Shown here piece by piece: positions 25,634-60,425 of a stretch of DNA of 63,981 nt. Origin of the DNA: Chlorokybus atmophyticus (lineage: Eukaryota > Plantae > Mesostigma and Chlorokybus algae). Where the stretch lies: contig RHPI01002568.1 in NCBI GenBank assembly GCA_009103225.1, positions 261,742 to 325,722 of the forward strand, written 5' to 3'. The notes beneath the pieces were generated by a model. That model did no database searches and was not told where the DNA came from. It saw nothing but the letters and a program-made list of their open reading frames with translations. The position numbers and the translations under genes are program-made. Position 1 is the first letter of the stretch, and every line of letters begins with the position of its first letter.

Positions 25634-25870
25634 NNNNNNNNNNNNNNNNNNNNNNNNNNNNNNNNNNNNNNNNNNNNNNNNNNNNNNNNNNNNNNNNNNN
25701 NNNNNNNNNNNNNNNNNNNNNNNNNNNNNNNNNNNNNNNNNNNNNNNNNNNNNNNNNNNNNNNNNNNNNNNNNNNNNNNNNNNNNNNNNNNNNNNNNNNN
25801 NNNNNNNNNNNNNNNNNNNNNNNNNNNNNNNNNNNNNNNNNNNNNNNNNNNNNNNNNNNNNNNNNNNNNN
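25634..25870. other. Assembly gap (N run)
   Basis: N characters in the sequence. Confidence 1.
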
Positions 25871-32383: not shown

Positions 32384-35300
32384 ATGGCGCACGGTCGGAC
32401 TTGGGTGTTCCTGGCAGGCCTGGCGGTGGGCTGGCTGCAGGCCAGAGCAACATGCACGCGCAGGTGCGGCATTGTAATCAGGCCAATCCCTACGTTTTCA
32501 CCGTTTCATGCTCGCATATCATGCATTGCTGCGACAACACACACACATGCCGGTGCACACTGCACATTGTAATGTAGGTGTCAACATTCGCATGCAACCC
32601 AAGTTAGTCAGAGACAATCAACCAACCCAAGCATGCAAGCAGATTGCGTAGAAAACCAGCAGCACAACAAATAGCTCATCCAACACCTACTCCCACACAA
32701 CCAACAACCAGCAAACAACAGCCAGCCAACCCCAACACAATCCCGGCCCACCCAGCACAATGTGACCAATGTGACCATCAAACCTGGCCTTTCACACGCA
32801 ACATCACACAAACACCAATCCACCCACCCCAACCCCAACCCCAACACCAACACTCCCCCTCCCAGATTCCGTCGCAAGCTCCGCGTGTTGACGCGTGCGC
32901 GTGCCACCGCGGCCGCCCTTTCCGTCAGCACGGCCGGTCCCAGCGAGCTGTCCCTCGTGCTGGGGTCGCTGCCCGCCTGGGTCAAGTTCCCGGACTACGA
33001 GAAGGCGGAGTGGCTGAATTACGCTTGGAGGGAGCTGTGGCCGCTCATGTGGGAAGGTGGGGTGGTGGTGGATGTGTGCCTGCAGGTTGCAAGCACACGC
33101 GCGCACTCATGCGAACGTACACACGCAGAGGCACACGCACATGTGCACATGCATGCGCATTGCCCAGACCACATGCACGCACATTACACTCGCTCACACG
33201 TTCACACACATATGTACATACAGATATGCGTACACCTCTTTCACTCAGTTTGCTCTCACTCTCACTCTCACTCTCACCCTCATTCGCACCGTCACTGTCA
33301 CTCTCACTCGTCTGTCGTCTGTCGTTATCTCCAGACACCTGCTCCTTCCTGTCTGCCCGTTTCGAGGAGTTGATGGAGCAGCACCGTCCCCCCCTCATCT
33401 CCTCCCTCACGTTCGCGCGTTTCGACGTCGGCACCAAGCCCCCGCTCATCACGGGAGTCAAGCACTACGCCACGGGGGATATAGGGGTCATGTACGACGT
33501 GGATGTCAAGTGGGTCGGGGACCAGGTGGGTGGGTGGTGTGCATGCGTGCGTGCGTGCGCGTGTCATGTGTGTGTGCCGTGTGGGTACAGCAACAGACTC
33601 TGTATTATTGTTGTGTTGTGCAGTCTGTGTCGCTTCGTGTGCGGAGAGGCTCGCTCTCCTTAACTGTCGGCGTCTGCGACATCCAGTTTCAGGTGAAGAC
33701 ACTTTGGCGTCTGTGCAACTAATGTCATGAAACATGTGGTTGCACTGTGCAACACTTACACACACGTGCTCACAAACACGGCCGTGCATGCACAAGCATA
33801 CGCACGCTCACTCACATGTGCACACACGCGTAACTATCCATACACTTGCAGCCACACGCACACGGATGCGCATACGCGCGTACGCAATGCACACACCCAC
33901 ACTCCAACACGCAGGGGCTCGTCCGCGTGGTTCTGAAGCCGCTGATGCCTGTCAAGCCATTCCTGGGAGCAATATCCTTCTCCTTCATGCAAGTAAGAAC
34001 GACATCCAATCCAACAGTCATATCTCTACATGTAACACACCTAGCTGAGATCATAGTGTCCTTCTCTCTCCACAACAGCCGCCCAACATAGACTTTGACC
34101 TCGTGGGCGTCACGGACTCGTTCCCTCTGCTGGAAGAAACCATTCGCGCACACATCATCGACCAGCTCTCCGCCCACTTCCTGTGGCCCAAAGCCTTCAA
34201 CATGAACTTTAAGGTAAGGTGTTGTGGTTGTGATGTGTGCACAACCACACTCGTTGTCATGTGTCCAACGCTGTCTCGCTGTATTGGTCAAGCCAGTAGG
34301 TCAATCAGTAGATCAATTAGTCAATCGGGGGTCCAGTAACAACCGAATGACTGCTTGTTCTACTGATTGGTTTACTGACGGATAGTGCGTGTGTGTGTGC
34401 TTGTGCGTGTCCGTGTGTGTCGTATGGTATGTGGGTATGTGGGTGTGTGCGTATGTGTGTGCTTTTGCGTGTGTATATGTGCAGGTGAGTGAGGTGAAGG
34501 ACTTGAATTTGCCTTCGGGCATACTCACGCTGAATCTGGCCGGTGCGAGTGGGGTGCGGAGGCGAAGATCATCTTTGATGATACTCTCTGCACTCGGTGG
34601 CTCCACGCTCGACGTGTACGTTGTGGTGAAGCTGAAGAAACGCACGGACAACAACAACGATCCCCACAAAAACAGAAACAAGTCTGGCCGGCAGAGGCGT
34701 GAGAGCAATGCGCTGAAACTCATGGAAGAGGAGCCGATATCGGAGTCATTGTTGGCAGCAGAGTGGCCCAGAAAGGAGTCCTTTCGCTTTGTCGTGGACG
34801 ATATCCGCGAGCAAGCCGTCCGATTGAAGATGTACAGCAAGTCTTCTTATAGATCCGACACGCTTATCGGCACCTGTGACGCGGATATCGCATCCCTACT
34901 TGCTGGCGAAGGTGGTGATATCCCACCAATACACCCCTTTGAGCTCGATATCACCGACCCTGCCCATGAGGACGATGACAATGTTGATGACGATGGCGAC
35001 GATAACAGCAATGTGGGCAGTATTCACGGCTCGTGCTCGTTCGCACCCTTCAAAGACATCCCAACAACAACAGAGGATGAAAATGATGTTCAACATCCCA
35101 ACAACAACAACAACAGTGAGGAGGAGGCCACAGTTGCAAACAACCATCATGTGGATGATGCGGTCAACAAGGTCGGGGCGCTCTTTGTCAAGTTTGACAA
35201 AGCGAGGATAGAACCTGGGAGTGCCTCGACGGTGTGTTGCCGGCTGCGTGTTGGGAGAGGGAAAGGGGGCAAAGAGGATGCTGTTGATGGAGATGGCAAA

Positions 35301-35839
35301 AGCAAAAACACTAGTGAGTGGCGGAAGACTAGCAGTGTCAAGGCGGTGGCGGATCCGGCCTGGCTTGAAGAGTTCACGTTCATCCTTGACGGGTAAGCGA
35401 TGTGCACCCATGTGTGCGCGCGCACGCATGCCTGCAAGCGTGCATGTGCGTGTGCGCACTTGTGCATATGCGCATGTAGGCACGTGGGTGTGTGCGCGTG
35501 CGCAAGCATGCATGCGTGTGTCTGTGCATGCGTACAAGTTTGTGGGAGCATGCATATGTGTACATGCATGTGCGTCTATGTGTGCACGCATTGTGATGAC
35601 AGAACACATAGTATGAAACCTTACACGATACTCCCACGTGCACGCACAGGTTGACTGAGCCTCTGGAGGTGTGCGTCGTGGACACGAGTTTCTTCAGCGG
35701 TGGCACTGTGCTGGGCACTGCGGTGGTGCCGCTGCAGCACCTGGCCCACGCGGGCGGGCGCGCCATCCAGGAGGACTTCCCGTTCACGGACCACAGACCG
35801 GGATCCATCAACCTCGCGCTGCGGTGGCTAAGCACGTGA
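32384..35839 (+). CDS. Synaptotagmin-like lipid-transfer protein (N-terminal TM, SMP domain, two C2 domains)
   Basis: LPAWVKFPDYEKAEWLN, ITGVK, GLVRVVLKPLMPVKPFLGAISFSF, PNIDFDL, and C2-like DPAWLEEFTF and DTLIGTCD. Confidence 0.9.
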
Positions 35840-37565: not shown

Positions 37566-40500
37566 TTACTGCGTGTTTGATCGCAATGATGCGTGTTCAC
37601 AGCCAAAGTACTTCTGCGCAAGGGCTCTGGCGACCCCAATACTATCTCCGTTCGGGTGCGTAGGCTCATCAAACTCCTTGTGCTGCCACCACAACTCAAA
37701 CGCGCTCACCCTCGCTTCATACTCCGTTTCATTCCACGCCAACCCCTTTTGCGCAGCGTCAACTATGGAGTCAATAAACGACTTCCATCTCGGGAGGTAG
37801 TATCCACTGACCAAACCGCCCCATTGCTTTGATGCATAATCGGACACTTCGCCTCGAATGGGACCCCAAAGAGTGATTTGATTCCGGGCTTGATATAAGA
37901 AAAGGGAAGTCATATTGCCACGGCCAGTGGCGATATCAGCGATACCGGCATTGTTATCGCTGCATCTGATTGCATCTGCCAGCCAGTTGCCCAACAAAAA
38001 GTGTTTTGATGTGGACAACAGTGTGTCAATATCGGCAATGAGCTCGGTCATGCGTTGGCCGGCTTCCTCCAGCTTAGATATCAGGGTTGGGGAGTTTGAT
38101 ATCAATGCGTTGCCAAGTGCGCTGGTGTTTCTGGCAATGGATATAAACTCCTCGTGCAAGCGCATGAAGTGGCTGCTCAGACACTGCCGACCTATGTCCA
38201 CTGCATCGTGGCGATATCCAGGAGTAGTGGGAGATATAGTATTGCCTTGCTTTGTTGGTAAGAAACTGCACCATGCAGCCTGCGATGCATGACATCACAT
38301 CAGCCCATGTGCGGCAAACACATGACATCACACACACCCGCACGCATACTTATACACACATACACGGACACACATATGCACGCCCACGCCCACACGCACG
38401 CATGCACGCGCACGCATACACGTATACTCACACATGCACCCACACACATCATGACCACACGTATTCGTTACCTCCAACAAAGCCGGGTCATAGGTCAGTT
38501 CCGTCGGCATAAACCCCGTCCGTTTCATCTCCACCGCCGGTCGTATCTCCACATAACTCTTCGTCACACCTCCCACCGCGCGCGTGGCATTGTACGGCCC
38601 CGGGAGCAACATCTCCCACGCAATTTCACACCCCCCACATGGCCCGTACCGCCGACGCGCGTAGTCCCGAACCCACTGTGACACATTGACACCATCTCCA
38701 AGTTTCCCACTCGTCCACGCGGTCTCGGCAGCCAACTCGTAGATGATGTAGTTCTGGTTGATGCCTTCCATAGTCAAACCGATGCCGGTGAGGCCGGGGC
38801 CGGCATGTTGTAAGGCATTGTGAGGACCTGCATAGAGAGCGTGAGTGGTGGGAGAGAGTGCTGTGGGTGGCATATGTTGGGTTGCACTGCAACGAAGCTT
38901 GTGGATATGGAATTGCAATAATAGCGACAACACTAACAGCAACAACGACAGCAACGACAGCAAGTATGACAAGCACAACAGGCACAACAACAACCACGAC
39001 CACAACAGCAACCACAACCACAGTAACCACCGCAACGACAACAACTGATCACCGTTTCCCACCGTCTCCAAGTCCCCGCTCATCCCCACATTTCCCCCGA
39101 AGTTGTGCAGCACGCAGTACGCCCACTCGTGTCCCGCAAAGGGCTTTGTGTGGGGACCCAGTCGTCTCGTCCACTGGGGTCGCGCCTCGGCGTAGAGGTC
39201 CAGCACGAGAAGGCGGCCAGTTGGGACACCAGACAGAAAAGCAAGCACCTGACGTTGGGAGAGACAGACGTGTGTAGAAGTGTGCATGTGTGTTGTACAG
39301 GTCGTGTGATACCACAACACGTACTTGTTCATCGCCCCACGTGTCGGGATCGTACGCGAAGAACCAGCCTTGCATGACCCAGATAGCCTGCGGGTCCGCT
39401 GCAATCAACGCTTTATACACCTGCATGATCATGACAAAAGTTTTTGATTGCATGCCCACAACAACAACAACAGTGACACTTATGCTCACCGAGCGGCTGA
39501 TATTTCGTATATATTCGGGGTCGCGAGAGCGCGGTTTCAGTTCATTGAAGAGGTCAATCTGGTAATAATGACTCATGAGTCGCTCCCCATAAAGCCGCCT
39601 CTGCTCCGCTATCACCGCCGCGAGGATATTCGCGAACAACGGAGCCGTCGGCTCGACGAAATCGACACAACAGTACGGCTCTTCAAACCCATTCCAAGCC
39701 GATGAAGCCGATATCCGCGACTCTTTTATGATATCCTTCATCTCCTTTGGCACGAAGCCGCTGAAAGCAGGGAATATCGGCGTCATGCCGAAATCGCTCA
39801 TGCGGGAGAGTATCGTGAGTTGGAGTTCAAGTTGGCGTGTGTAAAAGTTGTCCCAAAGAGGAGTGTGGGTGTGTTGTTGTTGTTGTTGTTGTTGTTGTCC
39901 ACCCCATGTGCCTTGGATGTTGCCCATGCGGCCCCATGCGGCAAAGGCCGGACCCGTGAAGAAACGAGAGAGGGCGCGGGAAGATATGTTGTAGGGTGGC
40001 TGTTGAAACACCCGAGCCCAGATGTACTCCTGCAGCAGAGAGTGTGTCTATGTGTGTGTGGCTGCGTGCGCTTGTGCTATGTGACCACTGTGTATGTTTG
40101 GCATGATATCAATAGTGAGACAGAGATGTTGACAGCAGCACGACTACTTTACAGTCAACACACCCACAGCACAAACGCTGCTGCTCACTGGTCGACAGAC
40201 AGACAGACAGACAGCGAGAGAGAAGCAAAGAAGACACAACAATTAGTGACATCACCACCACTCGCCTGGCCGACGGGAGCAAGGGGCATGTTAATGCCGT
40301 TGGCGGCCATCCAATCCAGCTCCCGCTCCCACCGCGCCCACTCCCACCACACGAAGCTGTAGCTGCACGCACACGTACACAGTCACACAACCGCAGCCCC
40401 TCCCTGCCATCAGCCAACACACACATAGACTCATGCACGCAATGGGCGCGAGTGTCCGCACCCACCCATCTGGACGTTCGCACACACGCGCATTTGCACA

Positions 40501-48556: not shown

Positions 48557-48980
48557 CACACGCCATGTTACCGCTACAACCGGCATCCAAGCATCGACGG
48601 ATGGGACGTAGCGCGACATTGCAGCTCAGCATATGGCGTCACTTGATAGAATATCGTTGGATGTGCTAGTATACCGGATTATATGGCACGATATGCTTAA
48701 CAGCATATGGATGGATATCACTTATATGGTATCATGCGTGCAATGCGACCTGAACTCTGTTAACTCAGTGACGTCAATGGTCACACGCCATCTCACCGCC
48801 ACAACAGGCATACAAAGAGCGACGGACGCGACGTAGCGCGACTTGCAGCATAGCATATGGCGTCACTTGATAAAATGTCGTATAATGTGCTAGCATACGG
48901 CATCATATGGCGCGATATGCTCAACAGCATATGTTGAATATTACACATAAGGTATCCTGCGTGCAATGCGCTTCAGTTCA
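48557..48980 (+). repeat. Degenerate tandem repeat, unit ~224 bp, two copies
   Basis: Anchors recur at 223-225 bp spacing: cacacgccat 48557/48782, gacgtagcgcgac 48605/48830, gcatatggcgtcacttgata 48629/48853. Confidence 0.85.
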
Positions 48981-49040: not shown

Positions 49041-49223
49041 TGAACTCTGTCAACAAGGAACTCACGACATGTCATGCGACATCGCACCACACCATTCTAT
49101 ATCATACCATATAGTGTCACAGCGATCAATATGCCGGCATATAATGTCATGTGACGTGATATGGCGCGGCGTCGCTAGACATCGTGAGTCTTGTGCAACA
49201 TGTTAATAGAGTTCAAGTCAAAT
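49041..49223 (+). mobile_element. MITE-like/foldback element copy A with imperfect ~35-40 bp terminal inverted repeats
   Basis: Left end tgaactctgtcaac..aaggaactcacgacatgtc pairs with right end gacatcgtgagtcttgtgcaacatgttaatagagttca. A second copy lies in opposite orientation at 51734-51908. No TSD identified. Confidence 0.6.
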
Positions 49224-49289: not shown

Positions 49290-51567
49290 TACCACGGCCC
49301 GGCAACCAAGTCGCACGCAAGCTCTTCGACGGCAGCGATGCCAAGATTGTCGAGCTTAGCGGCCGCGTTGTTTCGTTGGTGCATTGCGTCGCCTTCTTTC
49401 CAAGGTCCATGGCGAATTCTCGACGTGTTGCCACCTTCAAAATTGCTTCGTCCGTTGCATCTACGGCTGCAACCTCACAGGCATACACAAAGGCTGGATC
49501 GCCAGAGTGGGAGTGCAAAACTTCAGGTCTCATCTTACTAGCGGTACCCACAAGGACGCCTTCAATGAACTAACACGCCAACAGCAAGACGACTTGCTGA
49601 AATACTAGTTGGATCTGTTGAGTCCTGCATGGTGGCATGCATTGTTGTGCATGGGTTGAGTGGCAAACTGTTCCACGGCTTATGAACTTAACAATGTGCA
49701 ATGTCACTGTCAGTTGACTTTGAGTGCATGTTGCTGTCTGCATGATGGCACATTGGACGGACTTATGTGGGAATCATATTATGTACTTGTTGCCACTTAG
49801 GGTCGGGCTGCAGTGGCACGACACAACTTCAATTCAACCTACTGTGGGTGCCTTTATGCCATTTGCTGGATCGCGGCCTTTGCAGCAAACAACCCCCCTG
49901 CCACCATCGCTGCATGATGTTCTGCACCTTATTGGAATCTTATACGATATGAACTTTATCAAAGACGCCAATGTCAGTGCCTTAATGGTGCCAATAGGTA
50001 CGTGACTGCTTCAGGTGACATTAACAGTTTCATTCAGTGCATGTATCCCAATAGGTTCTCGTGTGACTCCGTCTAAGCGCCGTAGGAACTTGTCTATGGC
50101 GCCTGATACTCCCACCACGTCTCATGTCACTAACGCTGAAACAGGTGAGCAATGTCATCGTTGCAGAGGTTCTAACCTGATCCGTGAACTACATAAACGC
50201 AGGGGAAGCAATGCCGCGTATGCCAACTCACCAATTTATATCTGAGCTTATGCGTGCTGCTATCGACACCTTCAGTGCCCACCTGCTTGGTGAAGACCAA
50301 AACAACGTTCGTCTACAAAACGAAAGTAAGGGAAATTGTGCCATTGTTTTGACACACACCACTGATGGCATTGTTGGCAGATTTCAAGCTAGTTGACGAG
50401 AACACAGTCCTTCGCGAGCGCAACCTGAAGCAAGCAGAGCAGCTACGCCAAAATCAGACACAGCCTGATCCTCAGATCGCTGCAAAGCTGTTGATAATGG
50501 TCAGTGAACTCAATTGTCTGCGTGCAGGCCATGCTGCTACAGAACAATGCTAACCTGGAGCGTGCATTACACGAAGAGCGTGCTGAGCACGTTAAAATGA
50601 CAGAAAGCGTAAAAAATGCAGACGCAGCAAGCATTGTGGGTTTACGCAAGCAGCTGACAGAAGCTTAGCGCAGGACCACACAGTTGTAGCAACACAATGA
50701 GCGTAACGATGCAAAATTGGCGCGTCTGCAATGCCAGATTGGAAGAAGCCAACCAGACGATTGCTGCACACAAAAAAAAAGGTGTGTGTTCCTGCATTGT
50801 TAGGAATTTTCAGCAACTGACTTGCTGTTGTAGATCTCAGAGTGGACAAGCGTCCTGCGTCTTCAAACGGCAAATTGGCGATTTTCTGAGCGCGTTGTAC
50901 CCAATGGCGTGCAGTTCGAGAGCTTTCAGCAGGAACTGGAAGTCACCAAAAAGGAGTTGGACAGCTTAACAAAATACATGTTAAAAGAGATTGACCTTGA
51001 CGGAAAGGTACTGAACAATTACAATTATGACAATTATCAACGAATGCAACACTTTGGTGTTCACTGGGTGTTGTACCAGGTATCGCTTCTCAATCGCAGA
51101 GATGTTAAAAGGCAGCTGCAACTGCAACTATACCAAACACTCTGAGAGAAGCTTTGTACCTACCTCTGCACAGTTGCCTGTTGCTGCGTGAAGCAGCAAC
51201 AACCGAAGAAATGCAACGACATGTGCGCCAGGACTACAAGGGCAAGCGCGTGGTAGACAGTGAAGACAACACATGCGGGATCTGCTGCAAGCAGAAGCCA
51301 GTGGAAGCGTTGCTACCAATGCCATGTTGCGGAGCTACACTGTGCCATCAGTGCTTGAAGAAGCTGCGCACAGGATCTCACCCTCAAGTTGAGTGTCCTT
51401 TCTGCCGCCGCTTTCAAATTATTTGTATGCAACGCCCACCACGTGGTGCAAAGCTCCCCGATTTCCCTGTATATAAAATGAGCAGCAGTGACGATGATGA
51501 GGATGTTGATACACACAATACCGTTGCTGCTGGCGCTGGGCCCTCGCAGCCACCCCCCTTTTTGTAG
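49290..51567 (+). pseudogene. Spliced, decayed gene: possible Zn-finger, coiled coil, C-terminal RING finger
   Basis: RING CGIC..PCCGATLCHQC..CPFC in 51154-51567. Coiled-coil exons with GT-AG borders and in-frame TAG stops. The upstream block CIYGC...FRSHLTSGTH (49384-49608) is linked only tentatively. Confidence 0.6.
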
Positions 51568-51733: not shown

Positions 51734-51908
51734 ATTTGACTTGAACTGTGTTAACATGAAGCACAAGGAACTCACGATGTCCAGCGACGTCGCGCGACAT
51801 TCTGCCATATCACGCCATATGACGTCATATGCCGGCATATTGATCGATGTGACACCATATGGTATGATATGGAATGGTATGGTGCGATGTCGCATGACAT
51901 GTCGTGAG
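51734..51908 (-). mobile_element. MITE-like/foldback element copy B, truncated by (CT)n
   Basis: Reverse complement aligns along 49061-49223 with scattered mismatches. Confidence 0.65.
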
Positions 51909-52519
<611 letters not shown>

Positions 52520-52716: not shown

Positions 52717-54170
52717 TCATCGACGCGCCCAAAATGCTTTGAACCTTGCTGGGTTGCCTTCATTCATATTGTAATCTTTGCACCCTCAGAAGTCGTATTC
52801 GGCGATGTACCTTGCTTCTAACCAATCTATTCGTGCCTTGCAATGTTCTAAAACTTCCAACTACACTTGCTCTTCAGAAGGTTTACTGCTATCAAAGTCA
52901 GGCAACATTTTCGTAGGCGGGTGTCTACGATGTTCCTTATAACGTCGACCTGGGTGGCTACTTTAACCGATATATACTTTCTGTGTTGCCACATGCGTCA
53001 ACTTGTAGACAAACTTCACACCTGTGTTTATGGGTTGCGCACGTTTTTTGAGGTACGTGCAGAGGCCCTGATGTTGGTGTTGGCATTGATGATGTTTCTT
53101 GCTGCCGAGGATCGCAGAATCATCTGGACCTCATCGTTTACCTGCAAAGAACAATGTTACTATAAATGCTGCAGTACACATCCGAGATTGATGTTGAATA
53201 TGGTGACATATATGCGTAGCGAAGTAGAAGCAAGGAAACAGACAACGGGTAAAGAATAAGAAGCAAAGGAGCCAATGCAAAAACAGAAGTGTAACAAAAG
53301 ATGGAGTGACTGCATGGGTTTCGGCTTGATGTGCCCATTGTTGTTGGAACTCTGCTATGCAACCATAGCATTCTCATGTCATCGCGACTAATCTTGGCAA
53401 GCACAGTATTCCCATCATCAAAAATGATAACAATAACAACACACCTCATTGGCATCAACATTTGCTACTGGAGCTTCCCTTGGATCTGCTTTGTTTATCT
53501 GCTCAATGATTTTTTCTGCCTTTCCTTGCGACATGAAACGCGCTGTCTCTCAGTTGCAAACTTTGCGAACGTGCACCAGCTCGAACACCTGTGAAACATC
53601 TGTTAACTACAGGTGCTTTGGCCAATGACCAAGTGTCACATTGATACATACCTGATTAGCGTAAATTGGCTCTGCATTATCAAGAAGATCTGAGTTGTCC
53701 TTGCGCATCAGAGTGTCACACAGCTTGTAAGCTACTTGGCGCTTCAGGTCATCAGAAATGTCGATGCCGAGCTTTCTGAGGTAGTAGATGCATGTTCCTA
53801 CACATACTTGCATCAGTTAACACATGCACCACAGTGTGTAAGTGTACATTTACCGCCTCTCGTCAGTTGCAATGGAGGCCACATGGTTTATGCAAACCTC
53901 TTGAGCTCTCTCTTTGGCAGGGCGAATTAACTTATCGACCTCTCACTTGGTGAATAGCCCCTCCAGCTTGTCGGGAGTGATTCCTGCTGAGTCACATGCT
54001 ACCAGTTGTTTTGCTGTCAGCGGACGACCAGGCGCATCACCTCCAGAGCTACTGGTACGTGGACGCTTAGAGCCAGGTTCGTCATTGAAAATTTAAGCGC
54101 GGAGCCTCTCGAACAGGTCTTTTCCGTCAAAGTCCATGCTGTCAACCAGGTGCATTGTCAATGCAACGCT
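52717..54170 (-). pseudogene. Intron-containing gene with C-terminal GIY-YIG endonuclease domain (53040-52717)
   Basis: Manual translation: GVKFVYKLTHVATQKVYIG*SSHPGRRYKEHRRHPP...EVLEHCKARIDWLEARYIAEYDF*GCKDYNMNEG. This has the Y..YIG, Arg, Glu and YN signatures. Phase-0 GT-AG introns at 53651-53589 and 53444-53142. The 5' start is uncertain. Confidence 0.8.
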
Positions 54171-54574
54171 CGCCAACATGTTGACTCACAGAGTTTGAGA
54201 TTGAACAGAGGTAAACTGAGCCACGCACCTGTGTCTGGCTGAGTTGACAATTTCCGCATTGGGCAGGTGTCTGAGGCAGGTGATGCGACAGGCCCTGCGA
54301 TCTAACGTTTCAACTGGTGTACATTTATAACAGCGCTAGATATACTGCCAATGTATATTTGCATGGCAAGGAAAAGGGTCTGCATCGGCAGAGCACCACG
54401 TGCTAAGCCATGCCGCGATGCGATTGGTGAGAAGAAATGATGGGATGGAGGAGATGATTGCATACAAAGCATGGTTGGATGACGGGCGATACGGCAATCA
54501 ATTGAATGTGCCATGTCATCAAACCGTACAATGTGTACATTGTGGTCATAAGATGCAATTCATGTTACGCGACA

Positions 54575-54840
54575 TGGTCCAATATCGTCGAACATGGAAC
54601 CATATAACAATGTTGTGCAACATCGTTAAAACATGCTCAAACATCATGCAATATGCGTTGATATCAAACAACGTCGCGCAACATCGTACCATGTCGCCTA
54701 AAGCAATATCGTCCAACTTGGAACCATGTAGTGCAATGTTGTGCAACATCGATCACACATGGTCAAAAATTTGCGATATGCGTTGATATCAAACAACGTT
54801 GCGCAACATCGTATCATATCGCCAAAATGATGCAACATAT
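54575..54840 (+). repeat. Degenerate tandem repeat, unit ~125 bp
   Basis: atgcgttgatatcaaacaacgt at 54653 and 54778. caatgttgtgcaacatcg also recurs at that spacing. Confidence 0.85.
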
Positions 54841-54885
54841 GTCACACCATTGCGCAAAACTCACTAGACTTACCGGTTATCAACG

Positions 54886-57800
54886 TCAATCCCCAAAAAC
54901 GGGCGTCATCTCTTCAGGGCGCGGCAAACGCGTCAACCGTAAATAGGCCATGTTTGTCACACGCGACAACGCCACATACCACAAACCAGGAGCAAACGCT
55001 TCCTGCATGTGGACAACAGTAGTTGATTGTACGCGTGCGTTGCACCTTGACACTTGTGCACTGTCATTGCATACGCTAGCTGCAAAGGAAACATAGCTTT
55101 GTAGTACGTTTTGCCTTGAAACGTTGTTGTTTGCTGCATTGTTCGGCGCATCCACATGAATTCTGCCAAGTGATAAAATGTAACTTGTATACTGCTCACA
55201 TTACCTTTGTAGTATCTGAACTGCGTCACTGTTCCCAAAGACCAATTGGCCACACCATCTTGCGGTTTTAAAACCAACACCTTTGCTCCCTTGGCGGCTG
55301 AAGGTAATAAGTTGAACTTGGGCTTGTGAATGCAGTCGTACAATTTGGGCACGTTCACTGCATTAGAAGTAATTTGTATTGGCACAATGGCATCGGTTGC
55401 AAACGTTGTCTCACAATCATGCTGTTGAAGGCCAGTGTGTCTTGTACATGTGAACACAATATGGTTGCATCACTTGGTAACTGCTGTAAGTACTCCGAAG
55501 TGACCAGACAGCCACCTAACGCATCTGCTATCTTTGTTAAACTGAGTATGCTAGAACGAATCCGAATCAAGAATTGAGCAAACAGAGGGTCTGAAGCGTG
55601 ACGCACTGAAACAGAAAGAAAATGTTGCCTGCGTAATGGCCACCTCTGTGATGCAGAAATATGGCATTTGTGGCAAACCTGCGTTGCGTCTTGGACTTTT
55701 TGTCCACAAACGGCTGGCAATTGCTTGTGGTCACCAACCAACACAACGCCGATTGTTGTAGAAATTCCGGTCCATGAACTTGCTGCAAGCGCAGCATCAC
55801 CAAATCAATCAACCGCGATGTCATTATGGAAAACTTGTCAATAATAAACACTCAACAATGATGTAACCGTTTGTAAGCATCATCCATAGCAGTTACAAAC
55901 CGGAGTTGCTGACCGTTGACTGGTATTGCGAAGTTGGAATGTACATTGAAGCATATGAGCTGAGCCACAGAGCCGCAACGCCAGCTGTAGCACTGAGTAA
56001 AACAGGTATCCCAGCAACACGCAACTTGTGAGTGATGAATTTGGTCAAAAATGTTTTGCCTGCTCCTGGACAACCAGATATTACATGTAGACCAACCGGT
56101 GCTGCAATGATACTACTTGCGGTGCATTCCTGCTGGCTGGTCAAAGAGAAATTGTCGCAAACGCAAACTCCTCAACATTTAAAGTACCTTGAAACATCGG
56201 CGCTGATACATCTGAGTCCGTTGTCACAGTTGAAGCTGGAGATGCAGGATTGGATGGTGTTGCTGTTGGATACTGCGTACTAGGTTCTGGTGCAGTTTGG
56301 CTGTCTGTCGGACCAGTTGCAGCCATAGACAAGGCATTAATAGCATTATCAGTGGTCTGCATCATGGCGTTCACCATATGGTAAGTCTTAACATCATTGT
56401 ATAGATGACGTTCGGCATAGCGCGTGACATGTGTCGACAAATTGCGGTTTGTGTTGTTAATAAATTGGTTGTTCAAAGAAATTAAATCAACTTAGGAACG
56501 AAAAGTAACCCGCTGAAGAAGTAAATTGAGACAAAACCCCTCAATGCTGTGTACAGGATGGTAATCTGTGACTCATAATTGAATGCATTCAATATGTCTC
56601 GTAAAGTACGCACAGTGTTATGTGGCACAGTGTCTCCATCTCGGTGCATGTACTGTCGAAAGTAGTTGTACATTGTTACTCTTTCTACCTCGTCAGGCCT
56701 GACACAATAACGATGAATGGGATGCACAATTACTGTTCGTGCACGACTGTTCACTATGCGAGAACGATCGTTAGGCAATGCGTGTCAACATATGTTACAT
56801 TGGACGACATTTGCATGATGGAATATTCAAACATATCAAAGCAGCTTCAGCTGGAGCAATGGGTTTGGACAAGTACATTGTGTTCAATATGCGCAATTCA
56901 TTAACAGTCAATCCTTGCAAACCGAGGGCATTGGTGTCTAATGTATCATCAACAGTGCCACAAGGTTCCATTTTAGTTGTGTACTTGACTAAATACTTGC
57001 TCCAATGACTGTCAGTAACTTGCAACACATTACAATGAGCACCCCACAACAATAAAAGCACTGAATGTGTGGGAACAACATTGCGGTCACAAGTGCGTGC
57101 TCTGTAGTAATTGTATATGCGCGTTTCTGTGTTAAACTGAGGTCGACGATCTGGTTGTACGGGATACAGAAAGCCCATGTCGCACTTGTTGTCAAATGCT
57201 CTGCAGCCACTGCCAACATCAGAACACTTGTGCATCTGCTTGTGTACAACATATTCATAAAGGACTCGCAATTTAGAATCAGTTGGTACAATTATTTGCT
57301 GATTTGCATGGTCAAAATCTCCGGCGATAAATGTAGTGATTTCACTGCAAACTCATTCAACATCATCGGGGTGTAACCACAACATAACATGTGCATGCAA
57401 AGATCCACGGTGTTTGTTTCATAGCTGATAACATAGTGCATCACACGTTCAAGAATATCTTTTTGCATGATATATTCTTCAACGAAGGTGTTGAACCGAT
57501 GATGAAACAAACGTGCGCACTCCATACGGGCATCGCGCCAACTAAGTTGCGTGGAGACATTGTGGTGAACATTCTGCAAATCCATGATCTCAGGGACTTT
57601 GATACTGGACACTTCATCTGCAGTCATGGTGATAAAGAGATGAGGCATACCCCAATGCTCAACCAGACACAGCAGCTCACTCAACTTTCGTTGATGCCAA
57701 CTCGGAGATTCAATACTGTCACCAGGAACACGAAAATTTACAGCATTTTGATGGCATCGTTGATTGTGGCAGAAGGTCGATGTTTGAGGAACTTCTTAAT

Positions 57801-58620
57801 ATTAGCGTCCACAGCAACTTCGCGGCACTTTCTGACTGTGAGAAGTGATTGACGGATTTGGTACATCAACAGCAAATAAGGCTTGTACAATGTGAAAACT
57901 GAGAATAACTGTGTAAGACGAAACTTGACTCAATCTGACAGTCTGATGTACACGTTACCATCAAAGAACCCACGTTTGTGCGGAAACAACATGGGCAACA
58001 GAGCAGACTTAACAGTTAACCAGGAATGTTGTACGCACCACCTGTATCTATGTGTATCAAAGAAGGAACACAAGGCCCATGCAGCGACATATGTCCAACG
58101 CGCAACATGGTGTCCACTGTGACTTCAACTGTGCTGCGCGAAGGAAATGGCAACAAAGTGGTTAAAACGTATGTGTATGCTGATTCACCAGCAATGTTAA
58201 AAGGATTACGATCCTGTGCACGAGACACAATGCTACGAATAGTAGATGAACCGACAGTGGGGATGCCGTCAAAACCAAATGGTTGTTCCGCCAAGGTCTG
58301 ATATTTCTGAACAAGAGTGTTGGACAATAATAACTCGCTCAACAATTCTAGCAACAAGATGGCATGTTGGTTCTTATGTGTAAACTCATCCCAAGTGATA
58401 AACGTACCGTTAATCATATTCAACTGCTGAACTTGGCCAGAAGTGAAACTGTATGAGTTATATAAGTTGCAAAGCGTGGCATCAAAAAGCCTCCGCACAT
58501 AAGCTGCTCGAAGAAGAGATACTGCTTCGCTCCGGATTCTCCTTGGGCACGACCATTTGTGCTGCAAAACGACTTGGTGCTTCCCGCGCACTGCTTCAAG
58601 TTGTTGTATGCATTCCTTGA
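54886..58620 (-). mobile_element. Helitron RepHel (HUH Rep + Pif1-family helicase), decayed by frameshifts and stops, 5' truncated
   Basis: Rep: GMPHLFITMT (~57645), HRGSLHAHVMLW (57412-57377, after a frameshift), NVVP..LLLLWGAHCN and YLVKYTTK (56995-56972). Helicase: GCPGAGKT (~56075), FIIDKFS, LVGDHKQLPAV, SVRHASDP.F, FPLQLAYAMTVHKCQGAT (~55091) and YVALSRV (~54978). Confidence 0.95.
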
Positions 58621-60425
58621 GCGTCAACATCCACCCACACGGAGGTGACAGCCACCAGCAGCAGTGCCTCGGGCACCACCACGTCCATGACCACCACATC
58701 ATTTGTGCCCCCGGTAATGCACAAAGACGAGACTACATAGGCCTACATCCGGCAATGCAGCGTAGCCGTCGCCGCTTACGCCCTCACTTGGCAGCAGCCT
58801 CTCCTGCCAGTGCACCTTCCGTAGCCCATCAACCACCAGCTGAGGAGAAGGCCTCCACCCTGGCGGCACTCTCCCCATGGACTTGGGCCTGCAACTGAGC
58901 CAGCGCTTTTCAGCCTACACCATCGAAAAGGCGCAAGAGCTCATCAAGTCAAGAAGGAAACCAAAGGAGACGCCAGTTCGTTTACATGAGCGCATCGTCA
59001 ACTTGTTGGAGGACACCACCCTGAACGAGATGCCACCAATCAATCCTTATCATCTGGCACAGGTGTACGTGGAAGACCTTAACCCACCTCTATACAAGCA
59101 TGTGAAGGCTGACTTATGCGGCGAAGCCAATCACACCCTGTATCAGGCATACATGCGCGCGGTGTACTGGCAAGAAGACCTGGTTCACGAGCAGGCCGCC
59201 CTTGAATTCAGTAGTCTCGCGCACCGCATTAGCGGCACCGGCTTAGCCTCCACCCGTGCACCGCCCAAGCACACGCACTCTGCTCATGCTGCCGTGCGAG
59301 TAGAGAACAGCCCCTCCCAAACCTACCACAGGTGTAGCAAAGAGGGGCACTTCATTCGAGTATGCCCGATGCCACGCGCTGATGCCCTTTGCAACCACTG
59401 CGGCATGAAGGGTCATCTTGAAGTTGTTTGCTACACATTGCATTCAGAGTTGAGGGAGGCTCTGAAGGCAGAAACCTCTCTTGTCCGCACTGGCGCCGAC
59501 TACAAAAATTCAAACAACTACCACAACAATAAGTGGAAGGGCAAAGCCGGCTCCTCCGACAGCTAAGCTTGGCGCAAGCACAAAGCCAAGGTTGCCTCCG
59601 TCATATGAGGCACCACCAGCTTGCACGGTGAGCGTAACGGGCTGCTTGCAAAAATTGAGGATTACGCAGCTGAAGAGATGAGCTAGAAGACCTCCGTTAT
59701 TGCGACTAGTACACCGCCTACACTGCCACCCGCATCACACGAGTCATGGGTGCTACGCGCCGCTCTCCTCGCTCGCCCCCTCACCCGCCTCCAAGCCGGT
59801 TTCCTTTTCCACCATCGCAATGGCCATGGGTTGATCCTCATACAGCCGGGACCACACCGGCTCCCACATTGGAGCAGCTGCTGGAGCAACGACACCCTGC
59901 GTGGCGTGCGGCCATATTTGCTATTCGCCCGCTTCAGGCCCCGGCAACCTCACCACTTGACCTACAGGAGCTCCATTAAGCGTGGCGAGACGCATTGCAA
60001 GCCGTTCGACACCAACCCCGTCGGGTGACCCCCTTACCTCCCTCCAACACGGACTTTCTTACCAGTCTTATAGGGCACCCTCATCGATGGGGCCAGCTAC
60101 AAATGAAATGGCGCAAACTTGTCAGGGGCTGCGATCCACATCGAGCTTTGCCAGATGATGACGGGCCACTTTCGGACTGGACATATGAGTCTGCCCAAAA
60201 GCTGGCCCAGGCCTACTGCCCCGCACCCCTTACCCAAGCTGGCGAGGTGGCCCTCGACGCCCAAATTAACTAGGGTGTCAAAGATCTGCAAATGGTGACC
60301 AACAATTAGATGTACCGCACTTGGTTTAAAAATCCTCATGACGGTTTTAAAGATGATCCAACTCGGGCGCTGGAACACCTACCCCCTTTCGCCATAGCAG
60401 ACGCTTGTAAGCATTTGCTATGGCA

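Follow-up and report, generated by a model that had tools for sequence, protein, structure and literature searches.

Helitrons are known for gene capture, and Helraiser and the other canonical Helitrons transpose with RepHel alone. To our knowledge, Helitrons are thought to need RepHel only, and the Helentrons, which are rolling-circle RepHel elements with a lasting accessory apurinic/apyrimidinic (AP) endonuclease, form the one recognised nuclease-bearing branch. Outside this group, a GIY-YIG nuclease is fused to the reverse transcriptase (RT) of Penelope-like retroelements, and programmed UGA readthrough is known for the UGA-CUA/UGA-CGG class of plant viruses and for UGA-CUAG in animals. In our study, a stretch of 63,981 nucleotides from Chlorokybus atmophyticus (contig RHPI01002568.1, positions 261,742 to 325,722 of the forward strand; hereafter the window) was analysed, and it was found to carry the remains of a Helitron-like element. 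The locus as a whole is best explained, and we regard this as likely, by a decayed copy of such an element with RepHel, a second gene ('gene 2') and a GIY-YIG nuclease in this order on one strand, where the nuclease would be expressed by stop-codon readthrough and would have an accessory role.

A GIY-YIG domain in a Helitron is itself already known. The HELIANO study (NAR 2024, PMC11417382) has mentioned such a domain, described as 'captured and transposed', for HelenSM92, an HLE2 family found in Sphagnum magellanicum, has proposed DUF6570 as the Pfam marker of HLE2 and has found the accessory genes of Helitron-like elements to be often fragmentary. The initial annotation of the window had supposed that GIY-YIG-bearing Helitrons may already be reported in algae; a report does exist, but its host is a moss and not an alga. 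In the literature searched, no other paper was found to link GIY-YIG with Helitrons and none to link Helitrons with readthrough, and the conserved module of RepHel, gene 2, TGA and I-TevI-like nuclease is not described there.

Conservation of the RepHel-nuclease pairing

Relatives of the element were collected by comparing a 158-residue Rep piece of the window (56795-57271) with 1.84 billion representative proteins, the nuclease not being used as a query, and the contigs of eleven full-length RepHel relatives from the better matches were examined. A lineage was taken as informative if at least 1.2 kb of DNA followed its RepHel stop; the other contigs end sooner. In all seven informative lineages (L001, L003/L004, L008, L009, L013, L014 and L015), a GIY-YIG domain of the same orientation lies 1.15-2.5 kb beyond the stop of RepHel; in the window this distance is 1.87 kb. 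The pairing, its order and its orientation are hence conserved in every informative distant relative, which bears out the co-occurrence implied by the initial annotation. Pairwise identity among these seven lineages is only 28-48% for RepHel and 19-42% for the nuclease. Moreover, the two sets of identities are correlated (Mantel r=0.72, p=0.0036, exhaustive over 5040 permutations), and those pairs of lineages that are closest in RepHel are closest in the nuclease as well. Since RepHel and nuclease have diverged together, the nuclease is an old part retained by the element, which entered once and has been inherited with the transposase, and it is neither a mere neighbour nor a recent capture.

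These results bear directly on the possibility that an unrelated GIY-YIG pseudogene, for example a Penelope-like or virus-derived one, has come to lie by chance beside a dead Helitron in a nest of transposable elements (TEs). The region is indeed such a nest, with a gag-like CCHC ORF (open reading frame) at 58877, a microsatellite and repeat arrays. A word search from the nuclease side led to two query clusters only, and a metagenome scan to one locus, L007, where gene 2, TGA and GIY-YIG domain occupy the end of a contig of 19 kb (62% G+C) and no RepHel was found within 10 kb upstream of the nuclease. A copy that is non-autonomous or rearranged is one possible reading of L007; the long ORFs in L007:1-10000, one of them of 582 codons, matched no Pfam family. 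Against a chance origin, the seven distant lineages were found through RepHel alone and still have the nuclease downstream, on the same strand and at a similar distance, so that the pairing is a property of the element rather than an accident of a TE nest. The co-variation of the two divergences speaks in the same sense, and no reverse transcriptase adjoins the nuclease in the window. Chance adjacency is thus regarded as highly improbable.

The downstream domain, about 100 residues long, is predicted to be a GIY-YIG catalytic domain of the I-TevI type. All of the eight intact relatives match Pfam PF01541 at E<=0.01 (best E 1.2e-12), and the scores of L001 (27.9 bits) and L003 (33.4 bits) both exceed the 22.6-bit cut-off. 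The best solved structure for the profile of the relatives is the catalytic domain of I-TevI (1MK0, E 1.2e-5), which is covered over the whole domain (residues 5-92), and the look-alikes of the nuclease in the atlas are phage GIY-YIG clusters. Across the nuclease alignment, the residues Y, Y, G, H, P and E do not vary. All catalytic positions are kept in the complete relatives; the Asn column is absent in L007 and L013, both of which end early. The nuclease ORFs stop 15-20 residues past the catalytic core.

In the window, the block VYKLTH..KVYIG..RRYKEH..LEARYI..DYNMNEG, which the initial annotation had read through three stops, was located at 53013-52720 in a frame different from that of gene 2. 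Its frame is interrupted by TAA 52965-52963, TAG 52863-52861 and TGA 52788-52786 and closed by a terminal stop at 52719-52717. The block read with stops as X was scored with a hidden Markov model (HMM) built from the eight intact relatives alone, the window copy being left out, and obtained 77.7 bits (E 4e-26, Z=1), whereas the best of 1000 shuffles reached 5.5 bits; the proposed family assignment has therefore withstood the profile search. The same HMM found this block as the sole match in a six-frame scan of the window. When the four pieces between the stops were given to Pfam singly, a weak SegE_GIY-YIG match was obtained on the first piece only (E=0.022). By tblastn the window nuclease is similar to L008 (E 2e-10) and L001 (E 1.6e-8), and the catalytic Y, Y-I-G, R, H, E and N are kept in it (FVY..VYIG..RRYKEH..LEARYI..YN).

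The RepHel remnant has the features expected of a Helitron-like element, namely a HUH Rep with two tyrosines and a C-terminal Pif1-type superfamily 1 helicase, the frame of which is now broken. The Rep piece matches Pfam Helitron_like_N (E 1.6e-11). In the alignment with the closest relative, P0001, the HUH motif RGSLHAHVMLW of the window corresponds to RGTLHAHILLW and the two-tyrosine motif YLVKYTTK to YLLKYATK. The helicase piece 56144-55893 gives PIF1/AAA_30 matches in Pfam, the Walker A motif reads GCPGAGKT and the helicase pieces align down to 54898. Homology to all long RepHel relatives extends over 58055-54892 on the minus strand, and the RepHel frame is closed by TGA at 54888-54886. 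With P0001 as tblastn query, q289-1362 is covered by 7 pieces in three frames with 8 in-frame stops, and in total the RepHel carries no fewer than 8 stops and no fewer than 5 changes of frame. The RepHel of the window is dead and the copy is immobile; the stops and frame changes of RepHel together with three stops in the nuclease and four in gene 2 leave the whole copy dead. The initial annotation had described a rolling-circle element carrying a second nuclease, for which it proposed target nicking or homing-like spread. The Helitron-type RepHel, the separate co-oriented gene region and the I-TevI-type domain agree with the described make-up, but the copy itself cannot act.

The upper part of an open frame on the 5' side of the RepHel homology may be its N-terminal region; this part (58056-58702) had no Pfam match, and no RepHel relative aligned above 58055. 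An AP (Exo_endo_phos) endonuclease domain was found neither in the window pieces nor in five full-length relatives. DUF6570 was likewise not detected at E<=0.01 in P0001, P0006, P0012, P0014 and P0035 or in the N-terminal ORF of the window. As this proposed HLE2 marker is absent from the five relatives, the element was not filed under Helitron2.

A conserved pairing may also be considered as an ancient capture without any role in transposition, in which a GIY-YIG cargo was taken once by an ancestral Helitron and was kept for a reason other than mobility, or has not yet been lost. Helitrons do capture genes, and Helraiser moves with RepHel alone. The GIY-YIG domain of the moss family was itself read as captured, in a study that also found accessory genes of Helitron-like elements to be often fragmentary (PMC11417382). 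Nevertheless, the nuclease frame has stayed open with Y, Y-x-G, H and E invariant across lineages as far apart as the RepHel identities above indicate. Its position, orientation and TGA junction have also been conserved, where neutral cargo would have decayed. We therefore consider a capture of this kind to be improbable, although less so than chance adjacency.

The TGA junction and the expression of the nuclease

Gene 2 is predicted to be a fast-evolving second gene with a basic tail resembling a nuclear localization signal (NLS). In the window it begins about 0.7 kb past the RepHel stop, where the initial annotation had placed an intron-containing gene of the same strand, and it is seen there as a coding-like single frame from an ATG at 54179 down to 53019. 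The frame is interrupted by stops at 54095-54093, 53945-53943, 53552-53550 and 53030-53028, and its tail reads RTSKNVRNP, stop, TQV. Two candidate introns have canonical sites, one at 53651-53589 (CAG/GTATGT...TTTCACAG/G) and the other at 53444-53142 (GAG/GTGTGT...TTCTTTGCAG/G), and it is plausible that both are real. SAP-like or helix-extension-helix repeats (L..LGI....L) were considered in gene 2; they obtained no profile support and were reduced to a guess. The spacer between RepHel and gene 2 holds a 125-bp unit twice (54580-54827, 85%) and many short palindromes of the GTTGCGCAAC type.

In six of the eight lineages (L001, L007, L009, L013, L014 and L015), the frame of gene 2 and the GIY motif are separated by one in-frame TGA. 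The frame which it ends is 83-266 codons long and has a lysine-rich tail (...GKKPAK or ...AKRAKPTV before the stop), and the first catalytic strand (e.g. LIYRVTC, TIYRMYN) follows 0-12 codons past the TGA. No usable ATG was found between TGA and GIY motif in any of the six. The codon after the TGA is CTN in five of them (CTA in L001 and L014, CTC in L007 and L013, CTG in L015) and ACA in L009, whereas among the other stops of the same contigs TGA accounts for 8 of 17 and CT comes next in 2 of 17. Of the sequence features of readthrough, a single in-frame stop and a startless downstream domain hence occur together in 6/8 lineages, five of which also have the favourable CTN context. The junction is probably a site of programmed UGA readthrough which would give a rare fusion of gene 2 and nuclease. 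The RepHel of L013 ends in TGA-CTA as well (L013:5497-5502), in the same context as the nuclease junctions.

Two other explanations of the in-frame TGA were set aside. An alternative genetic code does not agree with the RepHel ORFs of 1350-1600 codons in these contigs, which are open under the standard code and of which several end in TGA, and selenocysteine would have no use at a linker position.

The window retains a vestige of this junction. Its sequence runs NVRNP, TAA, TQV, TGA, two bases and then FVYKLTH, the TGA at 53018-53016 standing two bases ahead of the nuclease codon at 53013 with the frames one base off register. It is read here as the family TGA junction, to which one more stop and a break of the frame by one base have been added. 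This break after the TGA explains the frameshift between the upstream exons and the nuclease which the initial annotation had found necessary.

A working nuclease might also be expressed conventionally, being spliced to upstream exons or begun at a start of its own, in which case the TGA would be the stop of a neighbouring cistron or intronic. The genes concerned are eukaryotic and intron-bearing, and canonical splice sites are present in the window. The L008 locus has TAA-CTT and then about 190 nt; an ATG seven codons ahead of the GIY motif might serve as the nuclease's own start there, and GT..AG introns are possible in many places. In L003/L004 the nuclease lies in the -1 frame after a TAG, and thus in a frame other than that of gene 2. 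In contrast, six lineages lack any ATG from the TGA up to the first catalytic strand and have kept the frame, the TGA and, all but one, the CTN context. Moreover, no GT donor is found in about 30 bases upstream of the TGA of L001, the other junctions being unchecked for splice sites. Conventional expression is on this basis judged unlikely, though it deserves serious weight.

Besides the two departing lineages and the RepHel-less L007 locus, several further observations weigh against the interpretation preferred here, that is, an element-borne nuclease expressed by readthrough. The six TGA junctions share a common descent and thus do not count as separate events, and splicing could alter any of the junctions. 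Gene 2 of the window, searched as separate exons and not as one joined model, gave no Pfam family, and it showed no similarity to the gene 2 of the relatives by tblastn, nor was there any in the all-against-all comparison among lineages. As there is neither sequence conservation nor a Pfam family, a DNA-binding role for gene 2 is a guess. No second copy in the window marks the ends of the element, the repeat scan having returned internal spacers and chance-size pairs only. Finally, the function of the nuclease cannot be read from the window because the copy is dead.

If UGA readthrough does operate, the gene-2 protein would on rare occasions be extended at its C-terminus by the nuclease. Such rare readthrough would keep a DNA-cutting enzyme scarce and would couple it to a nuclear-targeting or DNA-binding partner. 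The nuclease may then serve as an accessory nickase or cleaver in transposition, acting on the donor or on the target. A more far-reaching proposal would be that the whole Helitron-like clade makes its I-TevI-like nuclease solely as a UGA-readthrough extension of an NLS-tailed protein and that this nuclease is required for rolling-circle transposition; in this strong form the proposal is put forward only tentatively, as it is more doubtful than probable.

Feature coordinates and the surroundings of the element

The features of the element and of its immediate surroundings are collected in Table 1. The conserved in-frame TGA junction, the RING-like gene and the repeat spacers had not been noticed in the initial annotation.

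Table 1. Features of the Helitron-like element and adjoining sequence (window coordinates; a dot marks features without strand)
Feature	Position	Strand	Basis
Inverted repeat, left arm	49055..49223	.	repeat scan
Coiled-coil and RING-like gene, split into pieces by frame shifts; converges on the nuclease	50365..51567	+	translation, Pfam
Inverted repeat, right arm	51734..51914	.	repeat scan
(CT)n microsatellite, about 300 units, separating nuclease and RING-like gene	51909..52509	.	repeat scan
Predicted GIY-YIG (I-TevI-like) catalytic-domain pseudogene	52717..53013	-	HMM of relatives, tblastn, alignment
TGA closing the gene-2 frame, vestige of the family junction	53016..53018	-	sequence
'Gene 2', coding-like blocks in a single frame	53019..54185	-	three-frame translation
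Spacer between RepHel and gene 2	54526..54830	.	repeat scan
RepHel transposase remnant	54886..58055	-	Pfam, tblastn with P0001, homology to long relatives
Possible RepHel N-terminal region (upper part of open frame 58702-58016)	58056..58702	-	ORF list

The window is eukaryotic and contains intron-bearing host genes. Exons of a host NAGLU (alpha-N-acetylglucosaminidase) gene are present at 38331-40011 on the minus strand (Pfam E 4e-53 and 2e-26), and a C2-domain ORF lies at 34389-35393. Runs of N occupy 2624-2799 and 25634-25870. On the 5' side of the Helitron, the gag-like ORF with its CCHC zinc knuckle (zf-CCHC_2, E 8e-5) extends over 58877-59566 on the plus strand. It lies 175 bp past the last open frame, so a retroelement appears to abut or truncate the Helitron here.

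On the other side, the RING-like gene gave a Pfam zf-C3HC4_3 match (E 1e-4, 22.5 bits) below the 27-bit cut-off, and the strict C3HC4 regular expression was unmatched. No counterpart of this gene was found in the loci of the relatives, though most of these contigs end just past the nuclease. The arms of the inverted repeat (181 bp, 84.5%) flank the RING-like gene, and recombination between them could therefore invert it. A tandem pair of a 225-bp unit at 48557-48970 precedes the left arm, and units of the CATATGNCGN type, each about 10 bp long, make up both the tandem pair and the arms. Next to the (CT)n microsatellite come a short run of (CG)n and one N (52529); the assembly may be uncertain at this spot, which lies between the nuclease and the RING-like gene.

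Additional ORFs were observed near the RepHel or nuclease genes of some relatives. In L014, the sole long contig (38.5 kb), a 425-residue ORF follows the nuclease on the same strand (L014:15948-17222) and may be a further element gene in this lineage; neither this ORF nor the other ORFs of L014 matched a Pfam family. Immediately ahead of the P0003 RepHel, a small ORF (L002:757-1014) gave a sub-threshold chromodomain match (Pfam Chromo, E 2e-4). In L010 (6070-6075) and L011 (4586-4591), the RepHel TGA directly precedes the start codon (ATG) of an ORF of 267 residues, which matched no Pfam family.

Comparison with known systems

The closest described case is HelenSM92, which is likewise a Helitron-like element with RepHel and a GIY-YIG domain moved along with it. 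It is a single family, reported as a capture in one sentence, and no cross-lineage conservation, junction or role has been described for it, whereas the pairing studied here recurs across deep divergence. The HLE2 marker DUF6570 is moreover absent from the five relatives of the window RepHel that were searched, HelenSM92 being compared by description only. The module of RepHel, gene 2, TGA and nuclease is missed by ORF callers, and its recognition would help to classify Helitron-like elements of algae and bryophytes. The window copy itself is a fossil only.

The nuclease shares its catalytic domain type with I-TevI and the phage GIY-YIG homing endonucleases, and its profile spans the whole I-TevI domain. 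In case of I-TevI, however, a linker, a zinc finger and a helix-turn-helix DNA-binding domain are present which the family described here lacks. The family nuclease is also neither intronic nor free-standing but lies behind a transposon gene. With only the catalytic domain and a transposon context, it does not belong to the I-TevI-type homing endonucleases.

Programmed readthrough as known from other systems resembles the junction in its single in-frame UGA, in the mostly CUN codon that follows and in the startless enzymatic domain downstream. It differs in that two lineages do not fit and in that readthrough is deduced here from sequence alone. A conserved UGA junction of this kind would give a compact example of a DNA transposon that uses translational recoding. 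If true, a DNA transposon would be dosing its DNA-cutting enzyme by recoding, as retroviruses dose Pol.

With Helraiser (Helitron1, PDB 7LCC), the element has in common the Rep with HUH motif and two tyrosines and the Pif1 helicase, and this is the best solved-structure match of P0001 (E 1.3e-19), the similarity lying mostly in the helicase. Helraiser, on the other hand, needs no second nuclease. A second branch which keeps a GIY-YIG domain through deep divergence would imply that an extra cut in donor or target is needed by some rolling-circle transposons.

The Penelope-like retroelements are similar as eukaryotic mobile elements using a GIY-YIG endonuclease. There it is fused to the RT, whereas here its partner is a rolling-circle RepHel and the nuclease stands behind a separate gene. 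The Helentrons offer the nearest parallel in organisation, since in both cases a second nuclease has been kept by a RepHel element; it is of the APE type (Exo_endo_phos) in the Helentrons and of the GIY-YIG type here. Hence, an accessory nuclease in the present family would parallel both the AP endonuclease of the Helentrons and the GIY-YIG domain of the Penelope-like retroelements.

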